From Klebsormidium nitens (lineage: Eukaryota; Plantae; Klebsormidiophyceae), in contig DF237215.1 in assembly GCA_000708835.1 (NCBI GenBank), forward strand, positions 66,096-118,773: 52,678 nucleotides of DNA, written 5' to 3'. The notes below the pieces were generated by a model. That model had not been told where the DNA came from. It did no database searches and saw nothing but the letters and a program-made list of their open reading frames with translations. Made by a program: the position numbers and the translations under genes. This document shows positions 16,594 to 46,100 of this stretch, one piece after another (the stretch's first letter is position 1; the number at the start of each line of letters is the position of its first letter).

Positions 16594-16805
16594 TTGACCT
16601 TTCAAGTTTGGAGGGTGATCACAAGCACGAGGGTGTGCTGACGCCATCATTGACCTCTCAAGTTGGAGAGTAATCACAAGCACGGGGGTGTGCTGACGCC
16701 ATCATTGATCTCTCAAGTTGGAGAGTAATCAAAAGCACGAGGGTGTCATCATTGACCTCTCAAGTTGGAGAGTAATCAAAAGCACGAGGGTGTGCTGACG
16801 CCATC
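16594..16805. repeat. Tandem repeat of ~4 copies of a 55-bp unit overlapping the stop codon of the gene at 16776-21165
   Basis: Unit ttgacctctcaagttggagagtaatca(c/a)aagcacgagggtgtgctgacgccatca starts at 16594, 16650, 16705 and 16752. The third copy has an 8-bp deletion. Confidence 0.92.
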
Positions 16806-19800
16806 GATGACGATGTCAGGGCCGCACTGACCGGGGCAGCATCTCATGGTCACCCCGGCTGCGTTGCAGCACTTGTTCGGCAACGGTCCGAATGGGTCGC
16901 AAAAGTCGTTGGTGCAGCTCTGAAGCGGTCCTGCAAAAGGCAGCATCTTTGCGGGTCAGTGACCGAATTTGAGATAACAGAAAGTTAAGGGCGGCTGATG
17001 ATGTGGAAAGTCCCCCCCGTTACTTTATTACGTCATGTATAGGTGACCACTGACAGTGTTGCTGATCAGTGCATGCGTAAGAGCGACGTCGCAAGCAATA
17101 ACTGTCGGTGTTGTTTGCTCAGTTGTCCCATTAGCATACTGGCCGCATACCTGCCCCTTAGGTCCATCTAAGCTTCTGACAGCAATCGACTGGCCCGGTT
17201 TTCAGCTTTCTGATCTGATGACGTCATGAGCTACCGCCCTGAGGGTTCCTTATCGGTGCCAATATGCCTGTCACTCAGCTTCGAAGCCAGTTCGACCCCG
17301 CTCAAAAAAAGCCATCCGTGAGCCTGAGTCAAAAGCCGAAGCTTGGTCCGAAAGCGCAGATGAGAGCGAAGACGAAGTTTTTTGAAAGACGGGGAAACAG
17401 CATACCGTATGAGAAGAGCAAATGCATTACTCAGACGGCGTCTGCACTATTATTAACCGGCTCAGATTCACTATGGCAGCAAATCTGCCTGTACCTTGCA
17501 CTTCGATAAGGAGCAAGTTTACAATCCTGAACGGTTATCAACCGACTAAACCGGACCTGTTGGAGCAGGAGTTGGCGCAGGGGTTGGAGCCGGAGTAGTA
17601 GGAGCCGGAGTAGTAGGAACCGGGGTGGTAGGAGCCGGGGTAGTGGGGACAGGCCCGGGGGTAGCGCCGCCGCTACCGAAGCCGAGGCATGTTGGGTTCG
17701 TGGTCCCGTCAGAGTTGGGCGTACTGGGGCCGCAGAGACCGGGGCAGCGGAGGCCGAGGGATCCCTCGGAGTTGCAGCACCGGTTGGGAGCGGAGCTGGC
17801 GGTGTCGCAGCGGTCGGCGCAGGTGGAGATAGGACCCGGGGTAGGAGCTGGGGTGGTGGGTACCGGGGTGGTCGGAGCCGGGGTGGTGGGAGCCGGGGTG
17901 GTGTGTACCGGGGTGGTGGGAGCCGGGGTGGTGGGAGCCGGGGTGGTGGGTACGGCCGGGGTGGTGGGTACGGCCGGGGTGGTGGGAACCGGGGTGGTGG
18001 GAACCGGGGTGGTGGGAGCCGGGGTGAAAGTCGTGGGCCCGGGGGTTGGTGCAATCACTGAGCACAAAGCAACGCAGTTGATCAGCTGCACTACCTAGGT
18101 CCACTAAAAGCATTGCATAAACATGGAACATGACCTACGCGTGGAGCAATTTAACAAAGACTGGCTTGAGATGGTTAGCCTGCGTCAGCTGAACAATTAG
18201 CGGCTGTCTGATCAAGTGAAGTTGTTGCATGTGCTTTAATCAGCAGTCATGATCGACAGGACGGATTTGATCTGCTTCAGTGGGGAAGGGAAATCGACGT
18301 CACGCTGAAGTCCAGAAAACGTCAGCCAAAACTCCCAGTGGGCGTGTTGCTTTCAAATGCTGCCACGTACGTTGATTGAAAGCTAGCTTGGGCTCACTTT
18401 TCTGCGGCATCGACATAGCTCAGAATCTGAGGAGCCCTTCATCCAAAAGCATGCCTGCAAAGCCTTCTGCTTGATGCCCAGATCACATGAGTTGCTAAAC
18501 ATTTGGAATCTGAGTTCCAAATGCCACGTCATATCAAGTAAGGTGCGAGCTCACCAATGCTCCTGCCCACAACGTAGACAACTGAGTCAAGTTCGAAGTC
18601 CAGTGCATCCGCTATGGCCAATCTGCATGTATGGAACACAGGAAGGTTTGGCGATATTAATCAGGTTTGATAACCAGACTTTAGTGTGGTTCTTTGACCA
18701 ATAACCGCGTTAAGCCATGCTAAAGCCGTGATTAATACTGCTCGAGTCAGGTTATTGGACACTCAACCAGCACTGAACCAGCCCGTCACCAACTATTTTC
18801 AACCGCCAAAAGTCCCTCATGTGCCACGAAGCACGCAAGTGTTCCAGTGACTTCAGTACAGCCCAGTCAATTTCACCTTAGTGTTGGACCTGGATTAAAG
18901 AGAAGCAGGCAAGATTTAACTGCGGATGTCCACATTCACTGGCCGAGGAGTAGTAGACCTACGTAACATTGATTGAGTGCAAAGACATTCGAACTTCGGT
19001 CCGGCCGGGTTTACGTGCTGCAAGGTTAGTATATAGCGACCAACTCGTAACAGCCGGAGATTTGCTCCCCGTTCCTTCTTCGCTGCTTAGATAAAGATGA
19101 CAACTTGGGCTCGCGCAAGAAGAGCCCAAACACTCTGAGGAGACATGATTGGAGGATTAGATTATTGGGCGTTCATTTACCTGATGTGTACAGTGTCTCC
19201 CATAGAGACGGAGATAGGAGCAGTTGTGAGAAGTCTCGTGTAGCCATCGTACGCAATGTGATGTGTGCTATTGTCAGCAAAGTTGTCCACATACTGTGCG
19301 GCATTGCTGTTAGGATTGACATTGTCGATGGATACGGCCTTTCCATCACTTGCCAGGGCCACGTTATCACGGGGTGTAAAGGCGCCGTTCCCCACTGTAC
19401 CGAAAAGAGAGGCAGCAATCAGATTGGCAGAAAGATGGCTGAAAGCAAATTGTTGCAGACCAGAGGGCTTCTAAAAGGCAGATGATTCAGAAACGGAGGG
19501 CTAGATTGGAGCAGACAAAAGGAACACGTGATGTTGAAGAATGTTTGCTTGACAAAGCGGACGGGAAGCAGACAAAGTATAGGGGAGGAGAAGGCTAGAG
19601 AATAAGAGAGCAGTGAAAAGAGTAAAGCAGAGTAAGGGGGGGGGGGGAGAGAAGACAGCTTAGATGTGGGTAGTTAAGTAGAACCATTTTGCAGACGGGT
19701 GATTGGCAGGTTACTTTTGAGAGAAACAGAGCAAAGAAATCAGACCCATCCAGATCCAAGATGCAGGGCCCAACGTGACATGCTTCTTAAAGAATTTGTG

Positions 19801-21165
19801 CGCTGCAAATACTGCAGAGAGAAATGAAAAGCAACGTCATGGAGGCTGCAAGTTGAGAACTTGCCTTCGATCGTTGCAGATTGGGTTTCAAGTCCTTGTC
19901 CAATCAGCTTGAGGCAAGACTATTGGATATTAGAGTACAATCATTCAGAAGGGGGAATTGACATATAGCCACTCACAGCCTCTCATACTCACCTTGTAAC
20001 CGAGAATCATCGAAATATGATTGGAACTCACCTTTCACAAAGAGCGCAAAGATGTCATTGAATGCGTCGACATACTCCAAGTACTCTTCCGACCCAAACA
20101 CATATTGGAATGTGAGCTGGCCATTGCCTTGTGCGGTCCCTTTGAAGTCCAGGATCGAGGCATCATTGGTCGTGCCATTGTTGATCTGGCTCAACAATGA
20201 GTCTCCAGGTTCGCCATTGATTGTAAAGCTGCTCTCCGCGAGGTTCTCGGTCTCAATGGACAGTTCTCCAGAGCCACACGTCAGCACCACTCCGCTGGAA
20301 ATGCCATATTCAGAGTTCAAGGCGTGCGAGCCGTCGAGTTGGAAGATGCCGGAAGCAGAGGTTGCCCCCGTATACACAACGGAAGACGCATCAACAGCGA
20401 GGAGACTGTTGGCTCCGACAAGAGTCGTGGCCAGACCTGGAAGAGTAAAACGGGCTCAATGTCAGATTAACTAGGGACACACATTGACACTATCAGTTCT
20501 TGTTACGTAAATAAGCAGGCGTAAAAGGGGTCTCAGTGTCCAGATCTGGCAGGTACACAATTGAAGGCGACACACGCAGGTGACATCAGCCTTCTAAGCG
20601 GATTGTGCTCAAGGACAGACTCTGTAATTCTACTTTGTCGAGGCAAAATGTCAAACTTCTCTGAGCTGCATGGTAGTCGGAGACTGCATGAATCCCTTCA
20701 GGAAAGAAAGTCTGCTTACGTATGACAAGAAGTTTACAAGGTGCGCTTATTGCTTATTGATTCTGTTGTCAGGATGACGTCAGATTAAATTACAAGCATC
20801 CGACTGGTTTGGGATTTGAGAGCTGCACATCGTGTGAATAGATGTAGGCAGTGTCTCACAAGCAAGCCTGCACGCAAGTGTCTCATAGATGACACACCGG
20901 CAGTAAACCTACCCAAAGCATCGGTAGCCTCCACAAACGAGTTGGCCAACAAACGGCGCTCAGCTCCAGTGCTCGTCCTCAGGATGGTCGCCTTTTGGCG
21001 TGCCGGCTGAATCAATGTTGCCTTGCCAGCGCCGCTCGCTATCTCGCTCAGGGGTCGCATGCCAAGCGCAGTTTCGCTAAGAAAGACGAGAATCAACAGG
21101 AGAACATACGAAGCCACCATAGCTGAGCTGGAGATCCTCGCGGTGGACAGCAGAGAGGGCGCCAT
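16776..21165 (-). CDS. Secreted protein: signal peptide, RRLL, choice-of-anchor L-like domain, PTTPA stalk, Cys module, stalk, Cys module; exons 21165-20913, 20436-20032, 19394-19181, 18622-18555, 18057-17557, 16930-16776, ~531 aa
   Basis: Hydrophobic VLLLILVFLSETALG; FQYVFGSEEYLEYVDAFNDIFALFV; NVAL..DGKAVSIDNVN; IAYDGYTRLLT; HIR|LAIADALDFELDSVVY. Phases 1,1,2,1,1 give one open frame. The exons at 18622 and 16930 are not in the ORF track. The last donor (GTCCGG) is weak. Confidence 0.82.
17560..18040 (-). repeat. Coding 15-bp repeat encoding PTTPA/PTTPV pentapeptides in two blocks flanking a Cys module
   Basis: Repeated ccggggtggtgggag on the + strand; translation PTTPVPTTPAVPTTPA on the - strand. 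Confidence 0.9.
19636..19647. repeat. G12 homopolymer in an intronic purine-rich tract
   Basis: Seen directly in the sequence. Confidence 0.9.
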
Positions 21166-22424
21166 TGATGTTGGTGCTCTACTTGTGCTGCAAGCTAGGA
21201 ATCATCAAGCTGGGCCCCTGGAAATGGCGCTAGATCTTTCGAGGAAGCAAACCCACTTGTCCAGATTCATCTTCAAAAATGCTCTCGGATTACTCTTCAA
21301 GCGAGCTGCTGAGACTCAGAGAGTACATTAGGTATATTGTATACGTACTACGAATGGAACTGGAAAGAATCGCCCTGCACTAAGGTGTCACATGTATCGT
21401 ATGCTGCACATGGTGTCCTTCAGCCCCGAACAGCTACCGGTAGTCACTTGCGCCGGCGGCGTGCGCCAATTGGCTGCCATGCAGTGCACTGAGACGGTAC
21501 GGTTACCGGTAGCTGCCAGTGCACGTGGCCGCCGCCCTCCGCCTTGCCGGCGGCAGCCCGGGGCTACATATCTACCGTACTACGTAGTACGCACGGTACA
21601 GGTAACAGGTTACAGCCTGAGGGCCCAGGCCCCTACTACGGTACGGTTACCGGTATACCAACGACGGAGTTCTGACATCGTCGGCTCCCAGGCCGACTGT
21701 TCTCCGGTCAGGATCGGCTGGACCTCTGAACCGGTCGGCTTGTGCGATCAGCCAAACACCTGATGATTCTAGCTGTCGGCTTTTCCGCCGACGCCCCTCG
21801 GTTGAGTCGTCGGCTGACGTTTGCCCGGTGTGACGGCTCGTGTCGAGCACTGATTATTATACGAACGTTGCAATTAGGGCCGGCGATCGGACTGACGGCA
21901 CTAAGTCCCACTGCACGGACAGCCCGCTATTTCCGGTAAGTCGGTTCAGGGATGCCCTCAAGCTGCCAGTTGGTAGTCCGATTGACTGAACCGTAATTTC
22001 CGTCCAGTCAACCGGTACGGAAGATCCGACCACACGCAGCTTCCAGTCGAAAGAATCTCAGCAGTGAGCACTGAGCAGGAGTCAGGACTAGGACTCGGGA
22101 GTCGGGAGTCGGGAGGATGCAGGGCACAATTTCGCGGGATCGCCCAATCCATACGTCGGCCCTCGGGCTGTGACTTGTGATGCGCAACCCCCTTTTTAGG
22201 GCGCGGGGCCGGCCTCCATGCGCATTGAGACTGAGTCGTGTCCGGACTCGCTCCTCAAAGATATTAGGGCATAAGTTGTGGGGTTGCTTACTCTGCAGTA
22301 CGTGGTGGCGCAGCGCCATTGGGTATTCGACCTTAGCGTCAAACAGGGTCAGTGAAAGGTCGGTCAAGCTAGTATATACGACTTGGCGACTGTGGGCCGA
22401 GGGCTTTGCCATCTCTCTCGTGCA
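21166..22424. promoter_or_regulatory. Divergent intergenic region between the two Cys-module genes, CpG/GTAC-rich with internal repeats
   Basis: Head-to-head ATGs at 21165 and 22425. An exact 18-bp repeat lies at 21494 and 21638 and a perfect 16-bp palindrome at 21576-21591. Regulatory role is inferred. Confidence 0.4.
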
Positions 22425-25400
22425 ATGGATGCCTTTAATGCAAGGAGCTGGACTTTCTGGATGGGTAGACTCCCTTGCTGCCTCCTCTCCTGCTTCCTGA
22501 TTTTTCTGCAGTCAGCCGTGCTCCTTGCCGGGTTTAGTGTGGCTACTGACAACGGCAAAGTGATCATCCTGGAGGATAGTGTGATTGGAAATATTGGCTC
22601 TTTGGAAGCTCAAGCAGTCATCAAGGCTGGCTTCACTCCTGACATTGTCAATGCCACAGTATGGGCCACCATGACAACTGCACAATTTGAGGCCTACCGT
22701 GGAATCTTGATTGGAGATCCAGGATGTTCTTTGCTTGCAAAAGGTGAGTCCGAGGTTGGAGTTGTGGGATTAAATACCCTGCCTTCTCCATCGGCCAGGT
22801 GTCATATCTGCCTGCTGCAGGTACTTCAATGACGTCATATTGACATGTAATTATGTCCATGGTGCAATTATGCATGATCGTCCCCTCAGGCCAGAGGGCT
22901 TTACTGACCAACCTTTAGCTGGCCCTACTGTTGGCAGCCAGTGCAAAATCTCTGTGAATGCATTGAACTGCCAGCTTGCTTGCCAAAGCTGCTTGGTGAG
23001 TAGTACAATCCTGTTCTCGCAAGATTGCCAGCTGCATCTGCAATTTTGATGAATTACTGACCTGCAAAAGTATAGCCCGTCTTGCTTTTGAAGCTTACGC
23101 ATATGATTGCCGGTTGCAGCTGCCGACTTTCCCCTATATTTCAACTATGGGGAGGCGGCCATAAACAACGCACCCACCTGGATCGCTGCTGTCACTGGAA
23201 ATATCCTCATTGTTGGGACAGACCCAGCCTACCATTACAATGAGGGCAGGACAGGAGCCAAAGTCCTGATTGAGAGTGGCGTTGCCTTTGCAATATCCAG
23301 CTCAATGGGAACGGGGGCCTATATCTGCCTGTCCTGCTCTGGGGGTGCAGGTCCTGATTATGAGAGTTGGCTGAGCAACTTTGGAGGCACGTGGAAGCTC
23401 CGTCAGCCAGACTGTGACTCCACAATCACAATATGTGAGAATCAAAACTTCGAAACTTGTAGGACTCATGAAGATCTTGAGATATGTGAATCAGACTTGT
23501 ATTCTTGTGGAGTCATGCAGTCTTTGAAAGGATGAATGGCCAGGGCTGCAATGCAAACCTTGCATATGGAGCAAGGTCTTTGCTGGATATATCTTCGATG
23601 CAACGCAGGATCCTACCAGTACCTCGGTATTGCCTCTGTTTGCTTTGGCATCTCCAGTAAACAGATTAGAGTGTCCCTGATTCAGCAGTGACAAGCATGT
23701 CGACTATTTCTTACAGTGGCCACTCATCCAGCCCTTTCCAACCTCACAAGCGCCGACCTATCCGACTGGCAGTGCTCCTCCCACGAGACCTTCGAATCCT
23801 TCAACACAGAAAGGTTCTTGCCACTGGCAAAAGCCAGCGACAATGATCTGCCCTACATTGTTGCCAGTGGACAAAATCTCGCTGCAATCAGTCCCCCGTT
23901 TCCACCTCAACTCCAGCCCCCTCCACCTTACCCCCCACTCTTCAATCCTCCACCACTTGGCTCTTTCCCTCCTGCAAGTTTACCCCCTCCGTCTACCACC
24001 TCTGCCTCGAGTACGAATGGTGAGTAGGAAGTGGGAAGTCTTGAACTGCACAACATGCTGCTCTTTGCGTTGTATTCTGCTTGCTTACAAGTCACCTCAA
24101 GTTGATACTGGAAACGTATAACACACTGCCTCCAGCTTTCATTGATAGGCATTGGTTGAAGCTTGACTATTTACCAGTACGTGTAAGATCGAGATTAAAC
24201 TGCCCTTTTGAGCTGTTGTTTCTTTGTTCCTTGCCAGCTCTTGAGCGTTGCAACGTCCCCTGTGACCCTTACTCCAGCCTTCCTAACCGCTGCTGTGATG
24301 CTGAGGGCCTTCTTGGCATATGCTGCCCTGGCGCTTGTGGAAATACGGTGGCCTTATCAGGAGGGGGGTCAGTTGCTACTTGTTTGGGCCCTGGTGGGGC
24401 CTCCCCTATCAATTATCCTTCGACAAGTCCAAGCATTCCGCCACTAAACCCGACAGAGTCCCCTTCCCCAAGCGGGACGCCTGCTCCAACAGTGAGGAGT
24501 AAGTCAAGTACTGGTCGCAATGCTTCTGAGTTTGAAGTCTGAATAGAGGGCTATTTAAGGTTCAACTTCGTGCTACTGCACCATCTTCTTTCAGCATTGT
24601 ATTGTGCTCGCGCACTGTGTTTGGAGCGTGTGTTTGGAGCAGAACATTACTAAGAATCTATGAAACCCATTTCGAGTCATCATTACATGGTATCGATCTG
24701 GAACGCTTTGTCTGCACAGGTGAACTCCAGCGCTGCAGTGATCTGTGCCCTGACGCCAATTTCCCTAATCGTTGTTGCGATGCCGTTGGACTCTCAGCTG
24801 TATGCTGCCCCGCCCAATGCGGTGATATCGTCTCTTTGCCGGGAGGAGGGTCCGTTGCAACGTGCCAGGGCTTGGGAGGGACCGTCCCAACCTTGACATC
24901 CCAACCACTTATACCGACTCCTTCGAACACCCGTGGCACAGATGGGCCAATTCTTTTTCCATTTCAATTTTGCGACCCAGATTCCGACTTTCCAAATCGG
25001 GTGAGTTGCTTACTTTTATGACTAGGTGATTGATGTCGAGACGAGTTCAAACCGAGACTTTCCAGGCTCTCAGTGTCGGCGTTTTCCTCATCGCCAAACC
25101 CTGACGCTTCTTGATTGTCTAGAGAAAAGCACACCAATCAATCTTTCTGGGGACGTTCTTAGCGTCGATATGACCAGATCTACTGCATGCCACCATGACG
25201 TCTTGAAGAAAGTCGGTTCGAAAAGAATGTAACTGATGCCGATGAAAACAAGGGATTTGCCTTCCGTCCAAGAAAACAAAGCTTTGTAGACCATCGTGAA
25301 GCCACAACTTCTCCATAAATTTATCAATCATCTTCATGCAGCCCAGTCCCTTTCTGCGGCAGCAATAAGCTTCTGAAGCTCGTTGCCTAAGGGGTTCGGC

Positions 25401-28400
25401 TATTTGTCCAGAAGTTTCTAGAACCATGCAACTGACTCTCGTTGGACATCTTGAAACACATGTACATCGTCTGTTGAAAGGGATCTGTTCATTCATTGAA
25501 GACGTTGGAAGTCTCAGAGCTTTGGCATGGCAATTTCTAGTCTAACCAGGCGTCAATCTCCGAACTGGCCACGACGCCACCATTCATACCAGTGCCTAAC
25601 TAGACTGGTATCCTCCTTTTTGCAGTGCTATAACGTAGACGGCTCCAGCTTTACCTGTTGTGGCCAGGAAAGCTGCCGCACAGGTCCCGCCAGTGCTATT
25701 CCTCTCTGCGCTAACGGCCTTCCCGGAGTGACACCTACCCAAGCGCCCGGTATCCCCAGTCCGAGCCCCAGTACGACAAGCTCAACCCCCAGCACTACGA
25801 GCCCACTAACCCCGAGCCCAACACCCGGCACCCCCGAGCCGAGCGCAACTTCTTCTAGCACTCCAAGCCCGACCCCAAGCACTACCAGTCCAACGCCCAG
25901 CATGACAGTACCGAGCCCAACGCCAAGCACCCCAAGCCCCACGACCAGCAGTCCAAGCCCGACCCCAAGCACACCGAACCCCGTTTCGAGCACCACAGCC
26001 CCGACTACCAGCACACCCACTCCTTCCCCGAGCACTACTCCGAGCACTCCGGGCCCCACTTCAAGCACCCCGAGCCCAACTCCCAGCACTCCTAGCACTC
26101 CGAGCCCGACCCCAGGCACTCCCAGTCCAACTTCCAGCACTTCGAATCCCACGCCAAGCCCCCCGAGCCCAGTCCCAAGCACCCCGAGCCCCACGACCAG
26201 CACCCCGAGTCCGACCTCAAGCACCCCGAGCCCACTTCCGAGCACAACAGCCCCCATTACAAGCACACCGACCCCTTCTCCGAGGACTACTTCGAGCACT
26301 CCGAGCCCAACGCCAGGCACAACAGCCCCCACTACCAGCACACCGACCCCTTCTCTGAGCACTCCGAGCCCATCGCCGAGCACACCAAGCCCGGCCACAG
26401 GCACTCCGAGCCCAGTCCCAAGCACCCCAAGCGCCACGACCAGCACACCGAGTCCGACCCCAAGCACACCGAGCCCCATCCCCAGCACAACAGCGCCCAC
26501 TACCAACACCCCCACTCCTTCGCCAATCACACCCAGCCCTACGCCGAGTACACCGAGCCCAAAGCCAAGTACACCGGCTCCCAGCCCCACTACACCGAGC
26601 CCTACTTCGACAAGCGCAACAGGTAAGATATGACGACTTGTTCGTAGTGCAGACTACCATTCGATTGATCGAAATCCGTACTCAATTTGTCTCGTGATTG
26701 GTCAGGTTGCATTCGAATCAACTTGAAGCCAGCCTTGCAATGGCGTTTGATCATTGATTCGATCTGGTTGCGCTGATTTACAGTAGTAGCCCTCGTAGTA
26801 GCAAGATAAATCGGTTTGAGCAGTTCCAATAACACGATATCGAAACGGGAAGATGTGCCAATGCTCGTCTATCCGAGACTGAATTCAGATGTCAGATGAG
26901 TTGATTAGAAGCGGTTTGAGATATTTGCTAAATCGATCTCGAAGCTCCTATGTTGATACACAGCTAGCGGCCACCGTGTATCCACGAGCAGTTGCTGAGC
27001 ATTTATAGTTCGTGGCGAGTCGTTAGAAACAGATTGGAGTGCCCACTTGTCTGAGGAGGTTTTCAACTTTCATATGATTGTGATTCGTGTCTGTTGCCCA
27101 CAGTCCCGTGTACAAGCCCCTTACAGCCCCAAGCATCACTCAGAAGGAGAGTGCTGGTGGTATTATCCAGAGTATTCAAGGAGACGGCTATTGTGGTCTG
27201 TCAGACACCGTACCCGCGGATATCCCACCAGAGTATTTCGACGTCTCTTATGCCATCGACTTTTACGGGAGAAATGTCGATGATGCCGCGCCAGGGGAGG
27301 TTTTCAGCTACACAGTGAAGGTGTCGGGGCCCTATTTCGAGGCTCTTCTCGAGGTGAACTCGGTGACAAATGTTATCACGTTCCAAGTGGAGGGGGCTAC
27401 GGTCCAGATCGATGCCACTACCGGCGATATCCTGGATCAACGCGACGCACCGGCATCGGCTGAAAGCGGCGGACGCAAATTGCTGGCTGAGAGCAAAGAA
27501 CTTTCGCCACCCTGCGCAAAGAGGGAGGCAACATGCACCGGGGTGACGTCGTTCCAGACAGCGACGCTTTGCCAGGGTATCACTAAGACGTCTCTCTTGA
27601 AAACGGCCTGCGCCAAGGTTGCAAGCTTCTTTCGATCGAGAGTGCCGAAGTTGCCCCCGACAATCCTGGATAACTTGTGCAGCTTTTTGGTGGACACAAC
27701 AAAAAAAGGATGTGAGAAAGCAATCGACTGTGAGACGTACGGGCTAGGGTGAGCGTTTTTACTGCCTGTACTAGTCATTTCCAATCGTAACTCGTAGCCT
27801 AGTTCTGCATGTCCAGACTCCAGACAAAACCTTCTGAGCATTGACCCTTCTTCAGAGCTGACCGTATCGGTCAGATCCGCATAGTAGTGCAGCTGGGGGT
27901 CTTCAAGCTGTGGAGTTTCTTTTGGTCACGTGCATCTCTGCGAAGGTCGACCCTGACACCTGATCAAAGTTTGGTTCTTGAAGAGCCTTTCTTTCGGTTG
28001 GATGTGCGAGTTCTTTCTAGAACCCGTTTACTGATCATCAATCTGCTCCATCTAGTAATGGAGCGGACTCAGGGGACTCGAGAGACGTGCGTGGTTTCGT
28101 CTTTGCTCAAGAAAGACAAACTTGCGCTGGTTTATCCATACTACTTGAACTTGAAGTACTCGCATGAAGCTTTCCGAAACAATCTGGCTGTTGAGAACTG
28201 CTTATATCAAGTCTGCCGTTGTGGTCTTGTCGACTGATTGTTCTTGATCTTCGTGTCTGCAGGACTTGTTGCAACTTTACACATTCATGTGCCGACTTCG
28301 ATTTCACATTCTCGGGGTCCTTCGACCAGTGCTTGATTGATTGCGTACAGATTGCCACTGATTGCTGCACAAGCGTCCCACTGCCTCCTGTCGCGGTTCA

Positions 28401-28452
28401 GATATGCATTAACATCAACTACAGTGCTTGTACACCTGAATGCGTTTGTTAA
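22425..28452 (+). CDS. Large secreted modular protein: signal peptide, bacterial-like unknown domain, poly-Pro linker, 3 Cys modules, ~290-aa Ser/Pro/Thr stalk, acidic domain, RKLL, 18-Cys tail; exons 22425-22743, 23120-23434, 23717-24019, 24238-24498, 24720-25000, 25626-26622, 27127-27748, 28263-28452, ~1095 aa
   Basis: Hydrophobic [18 protein letters not shown]. All eight exons join with GT-AG sites in phases 1,1,1,1,0,1,2 and form one open frame ending CTPECVC*. Confidence 0.8.
25735..26622 (+). repeat. Coding Ser/Pro/Thr repeat (PSTPSPT..) with higher-order STTAP(T/I)T(S/N)TPTPS units
   Basis: Translation of exon 6 of the gene at 22425-28452. Confidence 0.9.
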
Positions 28453-29674
28453 ATCCGTTTAAAGGAACGGCCGGGACTGTAGTTCAGAAGCAAGTGTGAT
28501 TAATAAGGGGGTTTCGGTCGCGTATACGTACGATTATGTATTTGCTGGCGGCCCGTTCTACTCTGGGTTTGTAAATTTTGCATCAGTGTTTAACGTGAAA
28601 TTTATCAGACAATATTTAGAAGAACACAACCTCATAGGCAAATAGATGGTTCATCGCATTGGACAATAAGACGCAGATTGCCCGTCAGATTGTCTTCCCG
28701 GCCACTCGCTGGAGTATTGAGCATATTCTATCATGACGCCTAGGACCTTGAGATCTGACACACGAGCTGACGTCATTGCGACTGCCACTCAAACCGACAA
28801 GCCAAATGCAAACGGTGACCGCGCCACGCGAGCTCAAACGGGCAATATCCAGTTCGTTCAATGGTACTCGATCAATGATGTGTAGCGCGCGCGCGGTCCC
28901 AACGCACATTGCTCCGAGGCTCAGATATTCAAGCGAAAAACGGGCGCGCTCTTTCAAAATGCAACTCTCGATCGATTGGCTAAGGTTGAAGACAGATCGA
29001 CCTCGCATCCAACGCTTGTTAACGGGGGAAGCTACTAGCGTCTGGAACGTACTAATTAATGATTTAATATGCAGCCTTTTGCAATCTAAATTAACCTGTT
29101 GCTGGTTGGGGATGCAAAAACGATTACGGGTAGTGAAACATATAACAACAATAGCCGAAAAATCCATGATCGCCGAACAACCTCCGACCTTAAACAACTT
29201 CATGAATTGCCCACATCATTCGTCTTGATGTTACTGCGCACAAGCATTCAGTTGGACTGGTCGAAGGAACACAAGCGTTGAATGTCAAACTAAGCTCTCT
29301 ACCCTGCATCGGTCTTTCAGCTTTGCTAGCTTTGCGTATACTACCTCTAGCTACGACTTGCATGAATGATGGCTAGAGAGCGTGATTATGGGCTAATTAC
29401 ACACAAAATGTACGATCATCTGGCTACGTTCTTACAATTGGCTCTACCTAAGAGCCTACGCCGCTCCTTATTGTCACGTATATACTTCACCCTAAAACGT
29501 GCAGTGACATTGGCCCACCGGTCACCTTGTCCAGTACTATTCCCTTTGACTTCTAAGTATACACATCTAATCAGATACTCTTGCACAACTTGATCCACGA
29601 CACCACCCCTCTGGCCGAGTATCTTAAAGGCACGTATGCCACGCCGCTGCTGCGACCTGTGGTCTTAGGAGGAC

Positions 29675-34193: not shown

Positions 34194-37100
34194 ATGGCGT
34201 CTCCTTTGCAGTCTGAGCAGCTCAAGTACTCGTCTGAACCCCTGCAACATCACATGTCAGGACTTGACTCCAATGGAAAGACATCCCTCCTACAAGACAG
34301 TGATTCATTTGTGACTCCGCCCAGGAGACGTTCAGCAAAGGCAGGAGCCACCCCCTACCCTGACGTCAGGAAGCCCACACCACGTTCGGAGGTGACATCA
34401 GCAAGTCCATTGAAAGGGGAATTGGCTGGAGTCAGGACCGTTGCAATCCCGGTGATGCAAGGCATCAAAGTGCTGATTGAGGAGAAGGAGAAGGAGCTGA
34501 CTGCGCTAAGTGAGCGGCGGGTCAAGGGGGTGGAGGCGCAGGCAAAGTAAGAAGGCTGCTCTGGGCCTCTACAGTAGCTTTGCTTCATCAAACGCTGGAA
34601 CAAGAATCTGTTGCTATCTGCATTGTGGGCAAGGTTTTCAATGTTAATACACTTATGCACTCAAAGAGATCAGCGTAAGAATCCACTTGCCTCTAGCATG
34701 CTGGCTGCTGGAGCCCAAATCTCTGCCACAATATTGAGACTACGACAACCAAATCAAGGGTCTTCCTGCTGTTTCCGCTGTAATAGTGTGTTGTGAGCCC
34801 CTTGTTGCTTTGAAACGGCTTGAACAAGACCATTCGCAGTTCATTCGCAACTTGAAGGCTGCTGTCTTGAGACAAGCTTCTTGCTTTACTGTCTTCGTTG
34901 ATCATTGAATGCTAAACGAACTGTCAGTCCAACCACCACACCAACTGGGGACTGTTCCAGCCAACCCCTTCAGATTTCCCTGGAAGGCTACTACTCTGCA
35001 ATGAACGCAGTCACTTCAGATAGTATCTGAGCCCCTATCTCCCATCCCCCTTCATCACCGTCAGTGGTGGGCCGTTCTCAGTACTTAACCCCTTTGTGGC
35101 CCTTCTAAGCGAACAGTTCCAACCCATGCTTTTAGCGGTTTCGTTTGGTTGCTTGCCCTTCTCTGCAAGAAGCTGGCAAGTACCTCCTTTCCCCCTCAAT
35201 CAGACCCTGTTCATAACTCTTTCTAACCCACCTCTCTTCTCAACAGGAGCCTGGCAGAAGATCTGCGCAGGAAAGAAGCCGAGATTGCCACTCTGCAAAG
35301 TCAACTCTCCCAACTTACTTCCGACTTCAAGTACAACCTGAAGCTGCTTGACGAGAGGGATGCAGAGCTTGAGAAACAGGACCAAGAACTGTTGGCATTT
35401 AGAAAGAGTGTTGCGGGTTTGGAGGCGCAGTTACATGAGGTTCGCAGGGGAGAGGGGCAGTGGCGGGAGGAAGCGGAGCGGATGCGGCAGAGGGTGGAGG
35501 AAATGGAGGAGGCAATCGGGGCGTATCAAGAGGTGAGCTGGCAAAGTCGTTGGTTTGTTGCTTTTGCGGGTTTGTGGATAATGATACGTCGAGCTGTCAT
35601 AGAACAAAGCAAGCTTGGTCCGGTTTCAAGGAGAAGGATGGCAAGAAGTGAGTGGGATGAGCGACTATGCGGTCTGGTTAGTATGCTTGTCAGCAGTCTT
35701 GCTTCTGATTCCTCAGCTTTATGGTATTTTGTCTTACTTCATTTTGTACTGGATGGATTGAGAGAGAGAGAGAGAGATAAGGAGTGCCAGTTCGTGAGGG
35801 TTTGAACACAAAGCTGTGAAGTTGCTTTCTGGTGCAAGACATGGTCGATTCCCTTGCCAGTCTTGAGGGTGCCACGTGGGGCCTTATGGTTCATGATCAA
35901 ACTCGAGTTGCTGGACGCTTCTTCGACGATTGGGGGAATGTGCAACAGGGATTGGGGTTCTGATGCAGGTTGTGATGGGATACATGACCAACCTAGAGAA
36001 TGGAAATGCTCAAAAGCGGACTGGAATTCCGCAAGGCACAGAAAGAGCAAAGAAACTACAAAGCTTACACACAGTCTTGAAGAGGGTGATGTAATAATGC
36101 AGGTCGTGGGCACGTGCGCGACTCGCTAGACAAAGAGAGTGTACGATATCAGCAGTGCACCCAAGAAGTTGCGGCAACCCAGTACCAAAGACAAGGTGAC
36201 AAACCATCAGATATTTTCTGTTCGCCTGATCCAGGTCGTGGCAAAAGTCCGTGACCAGCTAGAGGACGCCAAGCGCCTGCGCGACGAGGAGGTTGCGAAA
36301 CAGGCTGCAGAGACGGGGGTGCTCAAAGCGCACCTAGGGGAATTGAACGCTCAGCACGAGGCAGACGTCGAGGCGGCCGTTCAAAGAGCGGAGGAAAGCT
36401 TTCAGGCCGAGAGAATTGCGACGGAGAAACGGGTCTCAGAAATGCGGAGCAAGTTGGAAGAGGGGGAGAATCGGAGACGGGAAGAAGTGCGCAGTTTGCA
36501 AGCCGAAGTGGAGGTGGCTAGAAATAAGGGGAACGAGCGGGTTGCGGAGGAGAGGGAAAAGGGGAAGCGGGAAGTGCAGAAGGTGCAGAAAACGGTGGAC
36601 GAGACGAGCGTCCGGCAGTTGAAACTCGAAGAAGAGCATAGGACGAAAACCGAGCTGCTGCGGAAGCAACTAGGCGCGGAGTACCAGGCGGCGCTACTGA
36701 GGCTGCAGAAGGAGCACGGTGCTGACGTCAGCGCGCGCGTGCGCGCTTTCGAGCGGGAGCGCGAGGCCCTGGAGCGGCAGGCGGGGGCCTGGGAGGAGGA
36801 GCGATTGACACTGGCGGCGCGGCTGGAGGCTGCGGAGAGGGAGGCGCGCGGCGCCGGTGTCAAGTGGGAGGAGCGGGTGCGGGCCTTGCAGGAGGAACGG
36901 TGAGGTGGCCTCAGTAGATGTTTGTCTGGGAGGACACGAAGGATTTGATTTGCACACCGGAGGGTGTGTATTGTGCAGCGGACATTTCAGGTGTTTGTAT
37001 AGCAAGAAGGGAATCATTGGCGTCAGGGGGGCGTTCGCGGCATGACCTTTTTATCAGCTTATTAAAAATAAGCTAGGAGTTTTGCGTTGGGCGAATGTCG

Positions 37101-40100
37101 CCGAGCCACTCGGCGTCTATGGCAAATCAACCTCTCCTGGACCCGCTGCCCGTACATGTCTTGCTTTTGAGTATCTTTCACAGGTGCAACACTCCGCGCT
37201 GCTGAATCATAAACCATAAGCACCCGCTCAAAGCGACCCCTCTTTTCAACAGGAAGCAAGGCGAGCAGCAGACGCAAGCGCTGCAGGCCCGCGTCACGGA
37301 GCTGGAAGGGCTGACGTCAGCGCAGTCTGCGGAGCTAGAAAACGCGCAGCGGCAGTCGCGCATGCTGCAGGCCCTCGTGGACGATCTTCACGCGGCGCTG
37401 CAGGCGAAGGAGGAGGCGACACGTGGCCTGCAGAAGCGGCTGGACGAACTAGAGGTGAGGAGCAAGTCGAGCCCTTTCGTTTTTTGATCCGTTTGTTCTT
37501 CCTCGGACATTTTGGTTTTTGGTTCATTGTCCGTCTTCTGAGACCTGCCTGTTTACGACAAGCATGACGTGTTCTGAACGCAGACTTTCAGGAGTAAACA
37601 GAGAGAACGGAGCAGTCCCCGGCTAAGCCTTTGACTGGGTAAGCGTTATTGGACTTTCTTTTGTGACTTTTGGATCTTTTGAACTGGGTTCTAGGAAACG
37701 GCAGCACTGTTCCTGGCCGTTGTTTACGCAGTTGAACAGGGTTCAAACTCGGACGTGTCAAAAGAAACCTCTAAACGGGGTGACCCTTTTGATGGAGGAC
37801 GAAGAAGACTTGGCAGACGGTTCAGCAGACGGTTCAGCAACTTCATTTTCGGACGGCATTCGGACGGGTGCTTGCCCGTCTGATATGAGCGCCAGAATCT
37901 TGTCCACTTCGTTCGTTTCTTGACACAGCCGTACGAGCTTTCAAAAAGCCATTCTGAAAATTTCGGCAGGCCAGGCCAATCCAGAACCCTCAAACCCTCT
38001 CTGCAGGGTGCCAACGTGGCCGCCGTCGCGGCCCTGGAGCGCGACAAAGCAGAGGCCGAGGCGTCCTTACGTCAGCAGCTGCTGGGCGAGTACGAGGCCA
38101 AGGTCGCGGAGCTTCTGGACGCCCTGCGGACGATGGAAGAGCACGTGGCGTCCGAATCGGACGCCACGTCGCAAAAGTTGGCGGAGCAGGTCGAAGCCCA
38201 CGGGAGAGAAGTAGAAAGACTGGAAGGGCTGTTGGAAGGGAGCCGGCGAAAGGTTGAGGGGTTGGAGATTGAGTGTCGAGAAGTGAAGGAGGAGCGGGAG
38301 AGGGAGAGAGACGATGCGCAGTTTGTGAAGAGCACGTTGGCGGCGCGGGACGCGGAAGTGGAACTATTACGGGGCGAAGTGGAAAGCATCCAGAAAGAGG
38401 TGGAGAATCTGAGCGAGGAGCGGACGGTTCGGACGCAGGAAGAGAAAGTTCGGACGGAAGAGGCGTCCGCGCTGCGTGTGGAGCTGTCCGCACGAGAAGC
38501 GGAAGTGGTGCGGCTTGCAGAGATGCTGGAGAACGCGCGGCATCAAGCCGAAGGCTTAGGATTAGAGGTCGCGCAGAACGACGGTTTAGGGTTTGGAACC
38601 GCGGGCAGGAGCGTCGGAGGATTTGGGGGTTTGGGCGCCGACGGTTTCGCGCTGGTACGGAAGTTGGCCGCCGAGAACGAGGAGCTTCGGAGGCGATTGC
38701 TGGGCGCAGAGGCGACGACGCCGAACGCAGTTCCAAACCCGGGGGGGTTAACGGACGGGCCGGGAGCACACGAAGGGTTACTGAAGTCGCGGACTGTGCG
38801 TCGGTATTCCAGAGACGAAGTGCGGACGGTCTCTGGTTTTGCGGACGGTGAAGAAGAGTCGCGTGGGGGCGAGCTTGGGCAACGAGAGGGTTTGGAGGAA
38901 CCGGGTTTGGGGCGCCTTGGTTTTGGCGAGCAGGGTTTTGTGACGGACAGTGGTCCGCCAATGGGGCTGCAGGTTGACCCGCGCCGGTCTTCTTCTCCAG
39001 CGATTGCGAAGCTCCAGCAAGAGATGCGGGCAGTGAGGCAAACCGTTGCGGCTCTGCGCTCGAGCCACGTGGCAGCTGTGGATGCAATCTCTTCGGATGG
39101 GCGACACGTGTCGCATGCTGAGGGCGATTCTCAAAGCCGGGAAGCACGAAGAGCTCCAAGGCCGCCATTCGCGGACGGCCGCAATTTCGATACGTCTGGG
39201 CCAATGGAAGAGTTGGCGACGCTTCGAAACGAGCTTTTGGCGCTGGGACTGGAGGTCACGGCCGTTAGGGACGCAAGGGAAATATCGAGCAGACCGGAAC
39301 GGGAGGACACGGAACCGGATCCGACAACGGATTCCGATCTGCATGCACTCGGCAACGAGCTACTTCAGCTTAAGGCTGTGGTGCAGAGCTTGGCCGCTCC
39401 AGAAACTGGCCGAACGCGGGTCGAGGCGGGGGACCGGAGAAACGTTTTCCGCGAAGGCAAGAAGAGTGAGAACCAAAGTGGGCAACGGGCAGCGCAAACC
39501 GACGCTGTGACGATCGGTGTACTTCAGCAGATGAAGGAAAGCGTGGCTGCGCTGAGAGCCGAAGTCGCCAGCCTGCAGCGAGCAGAAGTTGGTGCTGTGG
39601 GACGGCAGCAAGTCGATGCACCGTTTGCTAACCCGGTTGCGGGTTTGGTGGGCGAGTTCAGGGCAGGGGTTAACCCCGGCCGGTTAAGCGAACCGACCGA
39701 GGGGTTTTCCGGGGGCTTCGGGACCCCAATCGCATTGACAGGAAGGGATGCGCATCTCAACGGAGAGGCGTTAAAATTGCGTCAGCAGGTGACGTCAGCG
39801 GGGACGGCTGCTGATGTGGCCGCCCTGCAAGAGAGCGTCGCCCAGTTGACGCGCGACCTGCTCGCCTTGAGGTCAGGAGCCGCACCTCTCGGTTCCGGTT
39901 CCGGTTCCGCCCACGGAGTGCAGCAGCTTGTCACCAGCGGACTGACAGGAAAGGCGAGTGGCGGGCAGGTTTTCGCTACAAAGGCGGGTGAGGTTTGGAC
40001 CGAGGGTGAGGAAGCGCGGAACGACCTCAGGGGACCGGAACGGAATAGTCCGATGCTTGTCCCGTCCGAGCTTCTTCAACGAGAGATTGCGGAAGCGCAG

Positions 40101-40733
40101 GCGGAGCTGGCTGCCCTCAGGAGCGGAAGCAAGGCTTTTCCGGCCTTAGGAACGGAGCGGGACAGGCCGGAATCAGGGAGCGGACTCGTGATTGAAGGAA
40201 TGGAAGTCAGCAAGGAAGGCCGGTCTTCAGTGCGGTGGGCGGACGGAGAGTCCACGGAAGGCGTCGAGCCGTCTGAACGAGTTTCCCAGGAAGCCACGGG
40301 GAATAGCGTTTGGGGAAGTCACCCCGGGCAGGCGAGGGGGATCCCTCGGGGGCCTTTGCTGACGTGGACCGACTTAGCGACCTGTCTGGAGCACAGCGAA
40401 AACGAACCGGGCAGAGAACGCTTCGTTCTAGTGGAGGCAGCGAGTGTTGGCAGCGGCCGAAATGGTGCATCCGTGCGTGCAGCGCAGCGCGTGCACTCGG
40501 TTGAAAAATTGCTAGTCAAAAATGCGAGAGAAAATGCATACATTTCAAGTAAACCGTTTAGTTACAGTAAGAAGTGGGGGCAATCCAGCGGGACGGCTCC
40601 CCTTAGAACAGCAAAGTCAGCGGCTGAAGTGCCGCCACATATAGCTATAAATGCGGCGCATAGGAAAGAGAAGCAGAACAAAGTCGGGGATGCCCCAAAA
40701 CTGAACCGAGCAAACCCGACAACCCTCTTTTGA
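34194..40733 (+). CDS. Long coiled-coil protein, CCDC57-like at the N-terminus; exons 34194-34546, 35247-35532, 36235-36899, 37253-37454, 38007-40733, ~1410 aa
   Basis: LIEEKEKEL.AL..RR and SDFKYNLKLLDERDAELEK resemble the recalled animal CCDC57 motifs (LL.RKEEEW.ALQ; EDF.YNL..L.ERD.ELERYD). Heptad-rich E/R/A/L sequence; phases 2,0,2,0 are consistent. Confidence 0.75.
35760..35777. repeat. (GA)9 microsatellite in an intron
   Basis: Seen directly in the sequence. Confidence 0.9.
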
Positions 40734-41320: not shown

Positions 41321-41495
41321 AGTGTGCCCTAACCGCGGTGTGCCCTAAGATAGGCACCCGGGGGACGGGTAGGGTTAGCTTGGTGGTTAAGGTGGGTCGG
41401 GGTGCGGAGCGCGGGAAGCTCAAAAGGTTAGGTTTTTTATAGTTTGTTCGGTCGGGGTCTACGGATCTTAGGGCACACTGCTCTTCGGGCACACT
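41321..41495. mobile_element. 175-bp MITE-like element with 31-bp terminal inverted repeats
   Basis: Left arm agtgtgccctaaccgcggtgtgccctaagat versus the reverse complement of the right arm agtgtgcccgaagagcagtgtgccctaagat (27/31). The interior is copy B of the dispersed repeat. No clear TSD. Confidence 0.7.
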
Positions 41496-42905: not shown

Positions 42906-43120
42906 CCCATGCATTAAATGCATGATGCAGGGCCTAGACTCCTGAGCCCTGTGCCTGAGCCCACACTGCACAGGCCCCAATCGAACAGACTGCTAGACGA
43001 AAGAGGGCAGTAGGTATTCGAATCAAGGCAAGTCAAATCTGGACAAAGAAGTCATACGCGCATTTAGGTAGGTAGTTTGAACGCCTCGGCCATGGGATAC
43101 TTGGCAATACTCCTCGCAAC

Positions 43121-46100
43121 ATGGCTTCCTCCCCGCCCTGCCGTCTGCAAGCGCTACGAGGGCTGGCCCTCGTGACACTCCTAGTCCTGCAGCTAGGGCA
43201 AACCGCATCCGCATTGAACTCGCGGATAGCGTCCGTGGCAAGCTCCAGGCGGTTGCTGCAGGCAGGCGCAGGGCCCAATCGTGAGCACCTTCGCTTTCGA
43301 GACTTTTCCAGGCCGTACTTGCTAGTTTGTCAAGTAGAAAGGTGGACTCCAACATAGTCCCAGCATTGCTTCTGGTCAATGTGCATTCCAAATGCGTTTC
43401 TTGGTTCATATATATAAGAATGAGTGGCGTCCTGATTGCTGCTAGGTTTGATAAGTAGCTTTCTGAAGGCCCTCCGCTCGTGTGAACGACAAAGAGTATT
43501 TTGGATTAAGAAAGCTGGCGAGCAGGTCCCCCAATACTTGCATGCCACAACTGCAGTTTCAGCGTCTGCAAAGTTGAGAATTTTGATTTTTTGGGGGTCA
43601 GCAGCTTGTGTCTTGAAGTCTCGTCTTTTCCTGTCCAGGCAGTATCTTCGCTATGGAATGTAGATGTGTATGTAAAGGAAGCACAGGAAATGTTAGCATT
43701 AGTGATGTGATCATGTCATCACAAATGACCAGGTCTAGGATTATGGTCCTGGTGTTCATTGCATCAGTTATATGCAGAATACAGGAACAGTCTATCGTTC
43801 ACAACCCGACAAGTTAGATACTTATGTCACCGCTAAAAGAGCTCCAAGGTATTTTGTCAAGGGTCCCCTGACTGGACCAAGTGGAAATGCTTTTAGCAAG
43901 GCAGTCTTTCTGTTATCTGAGGAACTCACTTTCATCGCCTCTACTGTGCAGCGCTCTGCCCCGACGCGGCATTTCCAAATCAGGTAACGTCCCGACACAC
44001 GCTTCAGCAGTTGCATCATTTTTGCTGTCTAGCAAGCAAACTTTGTTGAGAAGCGAGCGCCTCCCCCTCCTCTTTCACAGCCTAATGCCATCCCCACATT
44101 TCTGTACCAGTGCTACAATCCTGCCGGCAGCTCGTACGTCGGCTGCCAAGGGTCATGTGGCGCCTCCGTCAACAACCAGGCCACATGCGCTGACGGCATT
44201 CAAGGGCCTACAAGCAGCACCCCCCCTGCTTCGACTACTCCAAGCAGCGCCCCCCCTTCCTCCACACCAAGCGCCACCCCCCCTTCTTCTACACCAAGCC
44301 CCACCCGCCCCAGTGGCCCCGCTCCTAGTCCTGCACCCGCCCTCCCAAAGCCAACACCGGCAGGTGATATTGGTCGCTTTGTTTGACCAGTGCTTTCCCT
44401 GATTGAGGATCAGGCATAAAGCCACTCTGTACCTGAGGGATAGCTTGTTTTGGACAGCTGCAGGCAGGTTCATATCTTCCACAAACGTGGACAAATTTAA
44501 CCAGAGCGGAACTGAGATGTACATTTGAGCAAGGAAGGAGCAGCCACCTGTGCATTGTATTGCGATTGTCTGAGAAAACCCGTTTGAGTGAGCTGGGAGT
44601 ACGGATCATGATTGAGGAGATGCTTCACCAGTGGTCAGGTAGAAGAGAGCTCCTTGAAGCAGGCCCCATTCACTGCGCATTGAATGTGTCGTTCCCTTTT
44701 TCAGAGAAGCCACCTTTGCCAAAGTAGGCCCCCTTATCTGCAGGTGGTGCGCCAAACTGTCCTTCAGGCCCTTTCCGGAACGCATGCTTCACTCCAAGCG
44801 GGGACGCCTACCTTTGCTGCTCGAGTGCTGGGTGCGGTCCTTCCAACCAAGCCAGCAATACTGCCTCCTGCGCTGACAACAAGTACCTTCCCATTGTCCC
44901 TGCAATCTATACCTTTGGTGAGACTTGACTTCTGCGACTTGACAGTCAAGAGCCACACCTTTCTGGAAGTGAACTTTGAAAAGGACATGAACTTTTCCGA
45001 AGGAAGATGTCAGAAAATGCTTTGGAAGGGGCAACCTTAATGCCTCTCTTTGTATGATTAGCCAGGCCTTTCTATGTCACGCATCAAACACGTACCACAG
45101 CTGATAAGCTTCTAAGGGCCAGGCTTGCTACTTAGTCTCTGAGTCTGCTGGAACGAAGTAGATTAGAGGCACACTTTCTTTATTATCTTCCTGGAATGCG
45201 GATCTGGTTTGCCTACGAGTGGAGGAAGTTCTTCCAAGCCTCCATCTTTGCCTCGCACAACGCCATGCCTTGTACCAGCAAGGGCAGTCTCAGGAAAGCC
45301 AGGTTACTCCTTGATCAGCGGGTTGTCCATGTGTTCCATGCTTTGGCGGGAAGGTAGTGGCTTGGGCTGATTAATTCTTCTTAACTTCGACCAATTTTGA
45401 TTGGAATGCATGTCACACTTGAGTCTTTCAAGTTAGGTTTCGAGATTGTCTCGTCTTATAGTGCTGGCCTTGCTTTCAAGTTGCTTGCTGGCTTGAGTTT
45501 GAACAGTAGCTCGACACGAATTAGTTCAACCTCCTGTCCACAATCATCAGATTCCACCGTGACCTTTGGTTCAGATTGGTAGCGTAGAAGGATGAACAGA
45601 AGTCTTAAGGAAGTAGAACGCTGAGAAACAGACTTTGCAGCAGCCGTTGCTTGACAAAAAATGTCGCGCTGTAAGTGATCCACAGCTGACCACTCTTTCA
45701 TCGGTGGAATCGACCTCACACGGAGCACAACGGGCTAACCAATTCTTTTCCGTGTGCAGGGGACTCTTTGGTGGACGTAGGCAATGGCCCGTATCTTGGC
45801 AATGGGGATGGCCTCCCCTTCCCCCCAAGCCCGCCTTATTTCCCGTAAGCTGGCCCCACAATGATTGATATCAAAACACATGTCGTAGCTTCTAGCAGGT
45901 TCGGAAGGCTTCTAGCTCTGCCTTGACGTAAAATAGAACTCTGTGTCACTTCATCGATTCCTTCTGGATGAGGATGATGGAGGGTGGTCATTTCCGAGCT
46001 TAAAAGACCGGCTCTACTACATGCCGCAAACGAATTCGAAGCCGCTGGCAAAGGGGTAAGAGCAGGGAGGCACTGTGCTCAAATCCACGTCCCACTTGCT

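Follow-up and report, generated by a model that had tools for sequence, protein, structure and literature searches.

It was found that the window analysed here, a 52.7-kb stretch of scaffold DF237215.1 of the streptophyte alga Klebsormidium nitens (eukaryotic, intron-containing, with a guanine-plus-cytosine (GC) content of about 52%), carries a small cysteine-rich module in exactly seven copies, well past chance expectation. The copies belong to three genes, called G4, G5, and G6 in this study. As judged by the searches made, the module is a predicted extracellular domain family that has not been described previously and that is found only in the genus Klebsormidium. By analogy, I favor the reading that the module is both a new genus-restricted extracellular domain family and an anchor for the cell wall or matrix, resembling a carbohydrate-binding module (CBM); taken jointly, the two parts seem to me to lie slightly on the probable side.

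The copies were recovered by six-frame regular-expression searches and by direct translation of the window. Five of them lie in uninterrupted open reading frames (ORFs), with the sequences quoted in an earlier note on this DNA. On the minus strand are G4b (16782..16916 from the first to the last Cys; eight-Cys type; 78.6 bits with a hidden Markov model (HMM)) and G4a (17687..17821; the eight-Cys type minus one Cys, with RC for CC and 7 Cys in total; 70.3 bits). On the plus strand are G5a (24249..24383; eight-Cys type; 83.3 bits), whose exon 24238-24498 also holds the following Pro/Ser linker, G5b (24734..24865; eight-Cys type) in the exon 24720-25000, and G6b (44758..44871; six-Cys type; 54 bits), which lies directly 5′ of a GDSL domain. 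The other two copies, G5c and G6a, are each split by a phase-0 intron at the same module position, between PN[RQ] and C[Y]. The first half of G5c (24971..25000, plus strand) runs up to the donor CGG/GTGAGT. Its second half (25626..25709, plus strand; six-Cys type, ending with PLC; 23.5 bits with an HMM biased to the eight-Cys type) is joined to it across a 625-nt GT..AG intron, and this joint, 25000/25626, was found in four RNA runs. The first half of G6a (CPDAAFPNQ; 43957..43983, plus strand) lies in a 32-nt micro-exon (43952-43983) followed by the intron, and the second half (CYNPAGSSYVGCQGSCG...ATC; 44111..44188, plus strand) has 5 Cys, with GC for CC. The splice sites of G6a are canonical GT/AG. 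With the acceptor at 44111, a family HMM excluding G6a gives a full-length match of 43.2 bits, while the deposited acceptor at 44081 gives 27.5 bits. The deposited acceptor lies 30 nt upstream and inserts PNAIPTFLYQ in the middle of the module; either AG site keeps the reading frame of the other, and the two may serve as alternative acceptors.

An HMM trained on the five uninterrupted copies was run on the six-frame ORF pieces of the whole window. The training copies scored E-values of 1e-15 to 1e-25, and the HMM also picked up the second half of G6a (44033-44383, E 1.6e-4), which was outside the training set, as well as the first half of G5c. Since no window segment beyond these pieces fell below E 0.1, there are seven copies and no further ones. 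The seven copies listed in the earlier note were thus recovered at their positions, five by ORF and regular expression, G5c by the RNA joint, and G6a by the family HMM. Pro/Thr/Ser-rich sequence adjoins every copy on one side or both.

Identity among the seven copies is only 28-62%, and some of them are nearer to modules on other scaffolds: G5c is 58-60% identical to modules of the database proteins P0013 and P0005, and G5a and G4a are 62-64% identical to P0009. Recent local duplication is ruled out by these values as the source of the seven copies. Thus, the module has been shuffled among genes over a long period and not duplicated recently in place. G4 and G5 stand head to head about 1.3 kb apart (16779-21120 on the minus strand and 22425-28460 on the plus strand), with G6 15 kb further, and elsewhere in K. 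nitens the accessions of KFL_001660180 (P0002) and of the NAGPA enzyme P0020, both module genes, directly follow one another on a single contig. Because of this proximity and these consecutive accessions, it can be said that module-bearing genes tend to cluster.

An alignment of 30 modules, including the six window copies other than G6a, shows five invariant Cys residues, while the sixth Cys, P10, N11, and G18 are conserved in at least 90%. The common form is a 36-residue unit with six Cys, C-x9-C[FY]-x9-CC-x3-C-x9-C, or in full C-D-P-x-S-x2-P-N-Q-C-[FY]-N-A-x-G-x4-CC-x3-C-x9-C, and 22 of 35 database modules agree in all their loop lengths. The eight-Cys variant (G4a, G4b, G5a, G5b, and one module of P0009) differs by an added Cys four residues ahead of Cys1 and by having Cys where the common form has F/Y. 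The consensus of the earlier note needs refinement here: its "CG" is not conserved in the wider family, and the eight-Cys form, dominant in the window, is a minority, the six-Cys C-C-CC-C-C form being common. The two Cys changes occur together in 5/5 such modules, namely 3 database and 2 window copies, and in 0/32 of the database copies with F/Y. Because of this strict co-occurrence, a fourth disulfide may be inferred for the eight-Cys variant, pairing the added N-terminal Cys with the Cys at the F/Y site. In G4a and G6a alike, it is the first Cys of the CC doublet that is missing.

In the six-Cys form, the aromatic residue after Cys2 (F/Y) is conserved and a second aromatic, two positions before CC, is present in 19/32 modules; the eight-Cys form has neither. 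An AlphaFold2 model of G5c (pLDDT 79) consists of two hairpins, the first of which carries F/Y on one strand and the second aromatic on the other (residues 11-14 and 21-24), so placed that they could form an aromatic patch. The model superposes on independent models of other family members in the AlphaFold Database (AFDB) with a root-mean-square deviation (rmsd) of 1.0-2.1 Å. The predicted fold of the module is two small beta-hairpins tied by disulfides.

Is the module found elsewhere? A profile of the five uninterrupted copies was searched against 1.84 billion representative proteins at E<=1e-3. It gave 17 matches, 15 of which have clear copies of the module. The matches P0011 and P0012 were rejected as repeat artefacts; their scores are sums of 15-19 weak stretches, with no module inside. 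P0001 is the deposited G5 protein (KFL_002660140) and P0006 is the deposited G6 protein (KFL_002660170), both of K. nitens DF237215.1, and every other labelled match is annotated as a hypothetical protein of K. nitens. Further family members came from word-based searches, namely a NAGPA-type enzyme of K. nitens, a dirigent protein of K. subtile, and an alpha-carbonic anhydrase encoded in a Logan assembly. The unlabelled matches come from the JGI metagenome 3300060285 and the Logan run ERR10900065, on contigs with about 50% GC. No other labelled taxon, other streptophytes and land plants included, gave a match in the profile and word-based searches. The family is thus common to K. nitens and K. 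subtile, and the HMM search suggested in the earlier note has brought out relatives whose labelled sources are Klebsormidium only. In a Foldseek search of 2.3 million AFDB fold clusters, the only other proteins sharing the fold have K. nitens-series UniProt accessions, their origin being read from the accession pattern; the best of these matches are unnamed proteins with template-modelling (TM) scores of 0.74-0.85 and rmsd values of 1.0-2.1 Å. The DNA patterns PNQCFNAxGx4CC and CFNAxGx4CCPGQC gave 0 matches each in JGI metagenome contigs and 185,579 prokaryotic genomes, a weak negative given the strictness of the patterns and the chance that an intron splits PNQCFNAxGx4CC. In the literature on Klebsormidium secreted and Cys-rich proteins, CBMs, knottins, and the secretome, no description of the module was found.

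Several deposited or metagenome-called family proteins, among them P0002 (at its N-terminus) and P0008, start or break right before Cys2-[FY], as in "...LEFQ/CFNAPG". Because these gene calls break at the intron position of G5c and G6a, this suggests that the phase-0 intron recurs in the family and yields truncated gene calls. At two loci (L001 and L002), however, the modules are intronless at this site.

The layout described in the earlier note, a domain followed by a Pro/Thr/Ser linker and a small Cys module, is real and recurs throughout the family with many more partners than the three of the window, which strengthens the analogy with fungal CBM1 proteins drawn there. Partners identified by domain matches are choice-of-anchor L, GDSL esterase, NAGPA phosphodiester glycosidase, dirigent, and alpha-carbonic anhydrase, and an LTD partner is known by its source name. 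Fold matches add partners with the AFDB names thaumatin-superfamily protein, alkaline phosphatase D (PhoD), and right-handed beta-helix protein, the module being C-terminal in two of them; the TM scores by query are 0.57-0.65 for the thaumatin-superfamily and PhoD proteins and a weak 0.38 for the beta-helix protein. Several partner domains remain without a name. In 11 of about 20 family proteins, the protein ends 0-2 residues past the last Cys of the module, and the modules are N-terminal in G6 and P0013. P0002 consists of four full tandem modules, a truncated fifth, and linkers, with no other domain. Full-length models have signal-peptide-like hydrophobic N-termini in a crude test; secretion of the module proteins may be inferred, and the linkers are probably hydroxyproline-O-glycosylated.

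The module is mobile: it is fused via Pro/Thr/Ser linkers to many unrelated domains of predicted secreted proteins and is usually the last part of the protein. On the favored reading, it would be a non-catalytic binding module like a CBM, keeping esterase, carbonic anhydrase, phosphatase, glycosidase, and dirigent proteins attached to some wall or extracellular-matrix polymer of Klebsormidium, and such anchoring would stop exo-enzymes from diffusing away from a subaerial alga. The candidate ligand site is the conserved D-P..S..P-N-Q-C-[FY]-N-A-x-G face together with the frequent second aromatic. A targeting or binding role is proposed because of the small size, the terminal position, the linkers, the tandem arrays, and the promiscuous fusion to extracellular enzymes. 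The best functional analogy is CBM1 (PF00734) of fungi, which likewise has about 36 residues stabilized by disulfides and is located at the very N- or C-terminus of unrelated secreted enzymes behind O-glycosylated Pro/Ser/Thr linkers. The terminal position behind such a linker is shared by the module, but this is an architectural likeness and not membership. CBM1 shows neither sequence nor profile similarity to the module, with no PF00734 match at E<=10 for the window copies or the 30 aligned modules. It has four Cys (two disulfides) and a flat face with three conserved aromatics, whereas the Klebsormidium module has six to eight Cys and at most two semi-conserved aromatics, and its hosts are fungi while that of the module is a streptophyte alga.

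Several points weigh against the favored reading. The conserved aromatics number just one or two, and neither is present in the eight-Cys form that dominates the window; either the aromatic face is structural, or the eight-Cys variant binds differently or not at all. Two copies, G4a (7) and G6a (5), have an odd number of Cys. The predicted model is of moderate confidence, and the disulfide pairing is putative. The search profile is skewed to the eight-Cys form, and single six-Cys modules score about 35 bits with it, at the edge of significance in the large search; the search may therefore have overlooked diverged relatives in other algae. Finally, of the sampled words from 16700-18150, where the G4 module exons lie, a fraction of just 0.00-0.10 is present in K. 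nitens RNA runs, while 0.6-0.95 of the G5 stretch is present in the same RNA studies.

Some of these features may be viewed differently. The module could serve hydroxyproline-rich glycoproteins of the wall as a structural or cross-linking knob, working in protein-protein assembly or disulfide exchange and not as a polysaccharide binder. In volvocine algae, Cys-rich globular heads of hydroxyproline-rich glycoproteins act in the assembly of the glycoprotein network. Long Pro/Thr/Ser stalks adjoin each copy of the module (the stalk of G5 has about 300 residues), and P0002 and P0003 are hardly more than modules and linkers. Since G4a and G6a lack the same Cys, both would carry a free thiol. However, the partners are mostly enzymes and not structural proteins, lone terminal modules behind short linkers typify targeting tags, and the number of Cys is even in most modules. 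I consider a structural knob unlikely.

Does the module belong to a known family? The window copies have no match in Pfam-A or NCBIfam at E<=10. For the 30 modules, Pfam-A at E<=10 gave only sub-threshold matches of two modules to PF11410 and a keratin match judged to be spurious. A sequence-profile search of the PDB gave no credible match to a solved structure, the ICAM-3 match (E 0.11) being dismissed as chance. Foldseek against the PDB with both models, a wide VIA-align search, the ESM Atlas searched by shape, and the Swiss-Prot part of AFDB gave chance-level matches only. In the ESM Atlas searched by features, the nearest neighbours of G5a are clusters like spider toxins and cyclotides, with a non-significant score of 0.70. 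The earlier note did not recognise the module as a named family, and this holds across Pfam, NCBIfam, PDB profiles, Foldseek/VIA, and the Atlas.

The sole Pfam family with any signal is PF11410 (Antifungal_pept; PAFP-S/Mj-AMP), the knottin-type antimicrobial peptides. These likewise have six Cys in the order C-C-CC-C-C, with similar loops in the second half; their spacing CC-x3-C-x9-10-C presumably equals that of the module. The C-C-CC-C-C framework, read from the sequences, looks like that of inhibitor-cystine-knot peptides, in which the Cys pair I-IV, II-V, and III-VI. Thus, the module might be a knottin-type defence domain with antimicrobial or protease-inhibitory activity, related to or convergent with PF11410 and perhaps released from a precursor; the polyprotein-like P0002 and the toxin-like feature neighbours in the Atlas would fit. 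However, the PF11410 matches (P0009:101-150 with 17.3 bits and P0007:356-394 with 13.8 bits) cover only about 20 residues and stay below the gathering cutoff of 22, and the other 28 of the 30 modules, including the six window copies in the alignment, have no match. No knottin fold was found among the Foldseek and VIA results for the PDB and the Swiss-Prot AFDB. The PF11410 peptides are free, basic, and about 37 residues long, whereas the Klebsormidium module has a longer conserved first loop (DPxSxxPNQ) and is fused via linkers, often C-terminally, to housekeeping exo-enzymes with no obvious processing sites, unlike a released peptide. A defence role is therefore quite improbable in my judgment.

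A strongly diverged member of a known Cys-rich binding family, such as CBM1, hevein/CBM18, or granulin, would be similar in size (36-48 residues), CC doublets, terminal position, and linkers. Hevein/CBM18 (PF00187) is, comparably, a small lectin domain rich in Cys that has a CC doublet and one conserved Gly; it is used as a single copy, in tandem arrays, or as a fusion to enzymes, chitinases for example. Its signature C-x4-5-CC-S-x2-G-x-CG-x3-4-[FYW]-C is absent from the module, whose spacing C[FYC]-x3-G-x4-CC-x3-C places the Gly before CC, unlike hevein. Granulin (PF00396) likewise has stacked beta-hairpins tied by disulfides and CC doublets, and it is C-terminal behind a Pro-rich linker on plant RD21-type proteases. 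Granulin models do appear among the weak AFDB matches, but at chance level (Foldseek E 3-8, TM 0.33-0.39), and granulin has 12 Cys in about 55 residues compared with six to eight in the module. Neither PF00187 nor PF00396 gave a match at E<=10 in the 30 modules, as was the case for PF00734, the PDB profile, Foldseek, and VIA searches gave none, and the Cys count and spacing are unlike those of each candidate family. Descent from any of these families is very unlikely.

A bolder form of the favored anchoring reading is that the module constitutes a new CBM family, a knottin-like lectin domain that arose in the Klebsormidiophyceae, binds a polymer typical of the Klebsormidium wall or sheath, and serves as a universal wall tag for exo-enzymes, as an adaptation to land surfaces, with eight-Cys and six-Cys subtypes differing in ligand or stability. 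This is possible but speculative.

The gene models of the window were examined in the light of the module. The splicing of G5 was read from Logan contigs of four RNA runs aligned to 22300-28250. The GT..AG joints are 22743/23120, 23434/23717, 24019/24238, 24498/24720, 25000/25626, and 26622/27104, and a loose end at 27749 resumes at 28264. The spliced ORF from 22425 encodes a signal-peptide-like segment, an unnamed domain, a Pro-rich stretch, G5a-linker-G5b-linker-G5c, and a Pro/Ser/Thr stalk. Exons 1-3 (22425..24019, plus strand), which are identical to P0001, cover the signal-peptide-like N-terminus, the domain of about 230 residues, and the Pro-rich segment; the domain has no match in Pfam or NCBIfam. 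The stalk (25710..26621, plus strand) is a continuous ORF, and RNA contigs span 25625-26622 without a gap or an internal joint.

The 3′ part of G5 shows a frame mismatch. The junction 26622/27104, seen in four RNA runs, shifts the long downstream ORF one base off the frame of the modules and the stalk, so that the main ORF would stop near 27316. The downstream ORF (27084-27749) has 222 residues and no Met, and resumes at 28264 into a Cys-rich tail. The deposited P0001 reaches this C-terminal domain only by reading part of the stalk exon in another frame and by an internal intron that none of the aligned RNA contigs shows. Possible causes are a true frameshift in the strain, an undetected minor isoform, or recoding.

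The deposited G4 model is a choice-of-anchor L protein of 287 residues (about 18853-21120) that stops before the last piece of its domain and omits the module ORFs. The choice-of-anchor L domain (NCBIfam NF038133; 18555..20455, minus strand) is encoded in three exon pieces, 20455-19976, 19470-19181, and 18622-18555. NF038133 matches G4 with 96 bits at profile positions 5-128 and 39 bits at 126-196, while the piece 18622-18555 matches positions 194-218 of 219 with 17 bits (E 0.003), which is below the cutoff but collinear. A putative exon at 17557..18057 (minus strand), absent from the deposited annotation and contained in a continuous ORF of 182 residues (18094-17549, minus strand), has Pro/Thr linkers with TPAPTTPVPTTP repeats on both sides of G4a. 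A putative last exon at 16779..16930 (minus strand) carries G4b and then a stop codon. Canonical in-frame joins exist at 19181/18622 (GT..AG), 18555/18057, and 17557/16930 (GT..AG). The putative spliced G4 would thus read choice-of-anchor L, PT linker, G4a, PT linker, G4b, and stop.

The putative fusion of the G4 modules to choice-of-anchor L is plausible from the in-frame canonical splice sites, with RNA nearly absent over 16700-18150. The earlier note had attached the module to choice-of-anchor L and GDSL domains; both domains are confirmed as NF038133 and PF00657, while the joining of the G4 copies to the former finds no support in RNA. Likewise, its proposed check by RNA came out in favor of G5, in which G5c is spliced in four runs, and not of the G4 module exons. 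Could some or all of the copies, chiefly the two of G4, be non-functional relics? The low RNA coverage, the loss of one Cys in G4a, and the lack of annotation for the G4 module ORFs would agree with this. However, G5 is transcribed and spliced with all three modules in frame, the G4 ORFs remain open and in frame, with canonical splice sites at their borders, the family has been kept between K. nitens and K. subtile, and growth conditions may account for the silence of G4. Decay of the copies is accordingly a highly improbable explanation.

In G6 (KFL_002660170; P0006), exon 1 (43121..43280, plus strand) has a signal-peptide-like start (MASSPPCRLQALRGLALVTLLVLQLGQTASA). A Pro/Ser/Thr linker (44189..44365, plus strand) lies between G6a and G6b. 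The exons of the GDSL/SGNH esterase extend approximately over 44872..47640 (plus strand), with a Pfam PF00657 match (E 3.8e-14) on residues 213-393 of P0006 and the block-I motif GDSLVDVGN at 45759-45785. Towards its 3′ end, the deposited G6 model ("...CLTCCLSTSHLSPSLHLSESISS...") resembles a translated or retained intron.

Between these genes, the region 36139-40733 (plus strand) is GC-rich (0.56-0.62) with a strong GC skew and has long ORFs for a Glu/Arg/Ala-rich, coiled-coil-like protein. It belongs to a gene with an annotated product of 1410 residues that is unrelated to the module.

K. nitens, whose wall chemistry is unusual, has a genome used as a reference for the algal ancestors of land plants. 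Recognition of the module corrects three gene models deposited for the window and marks no fewer than ten "hypothetical proteins" of K. nitens as modular proteins that are probably secreted. If binding is confirmed, the module would define a new CBM family and supply both a probe specific to one wall polymer of Klebsormidium and a small anchoring tag compatible with secretion. The module family is moderately relevant to algal cell-wall biology and plant terrestrialisation, and its attachment, within one genus, to some ten types of extracellular enzyme points to a lineage-specific retention of exo-enzymes at the cell surface.

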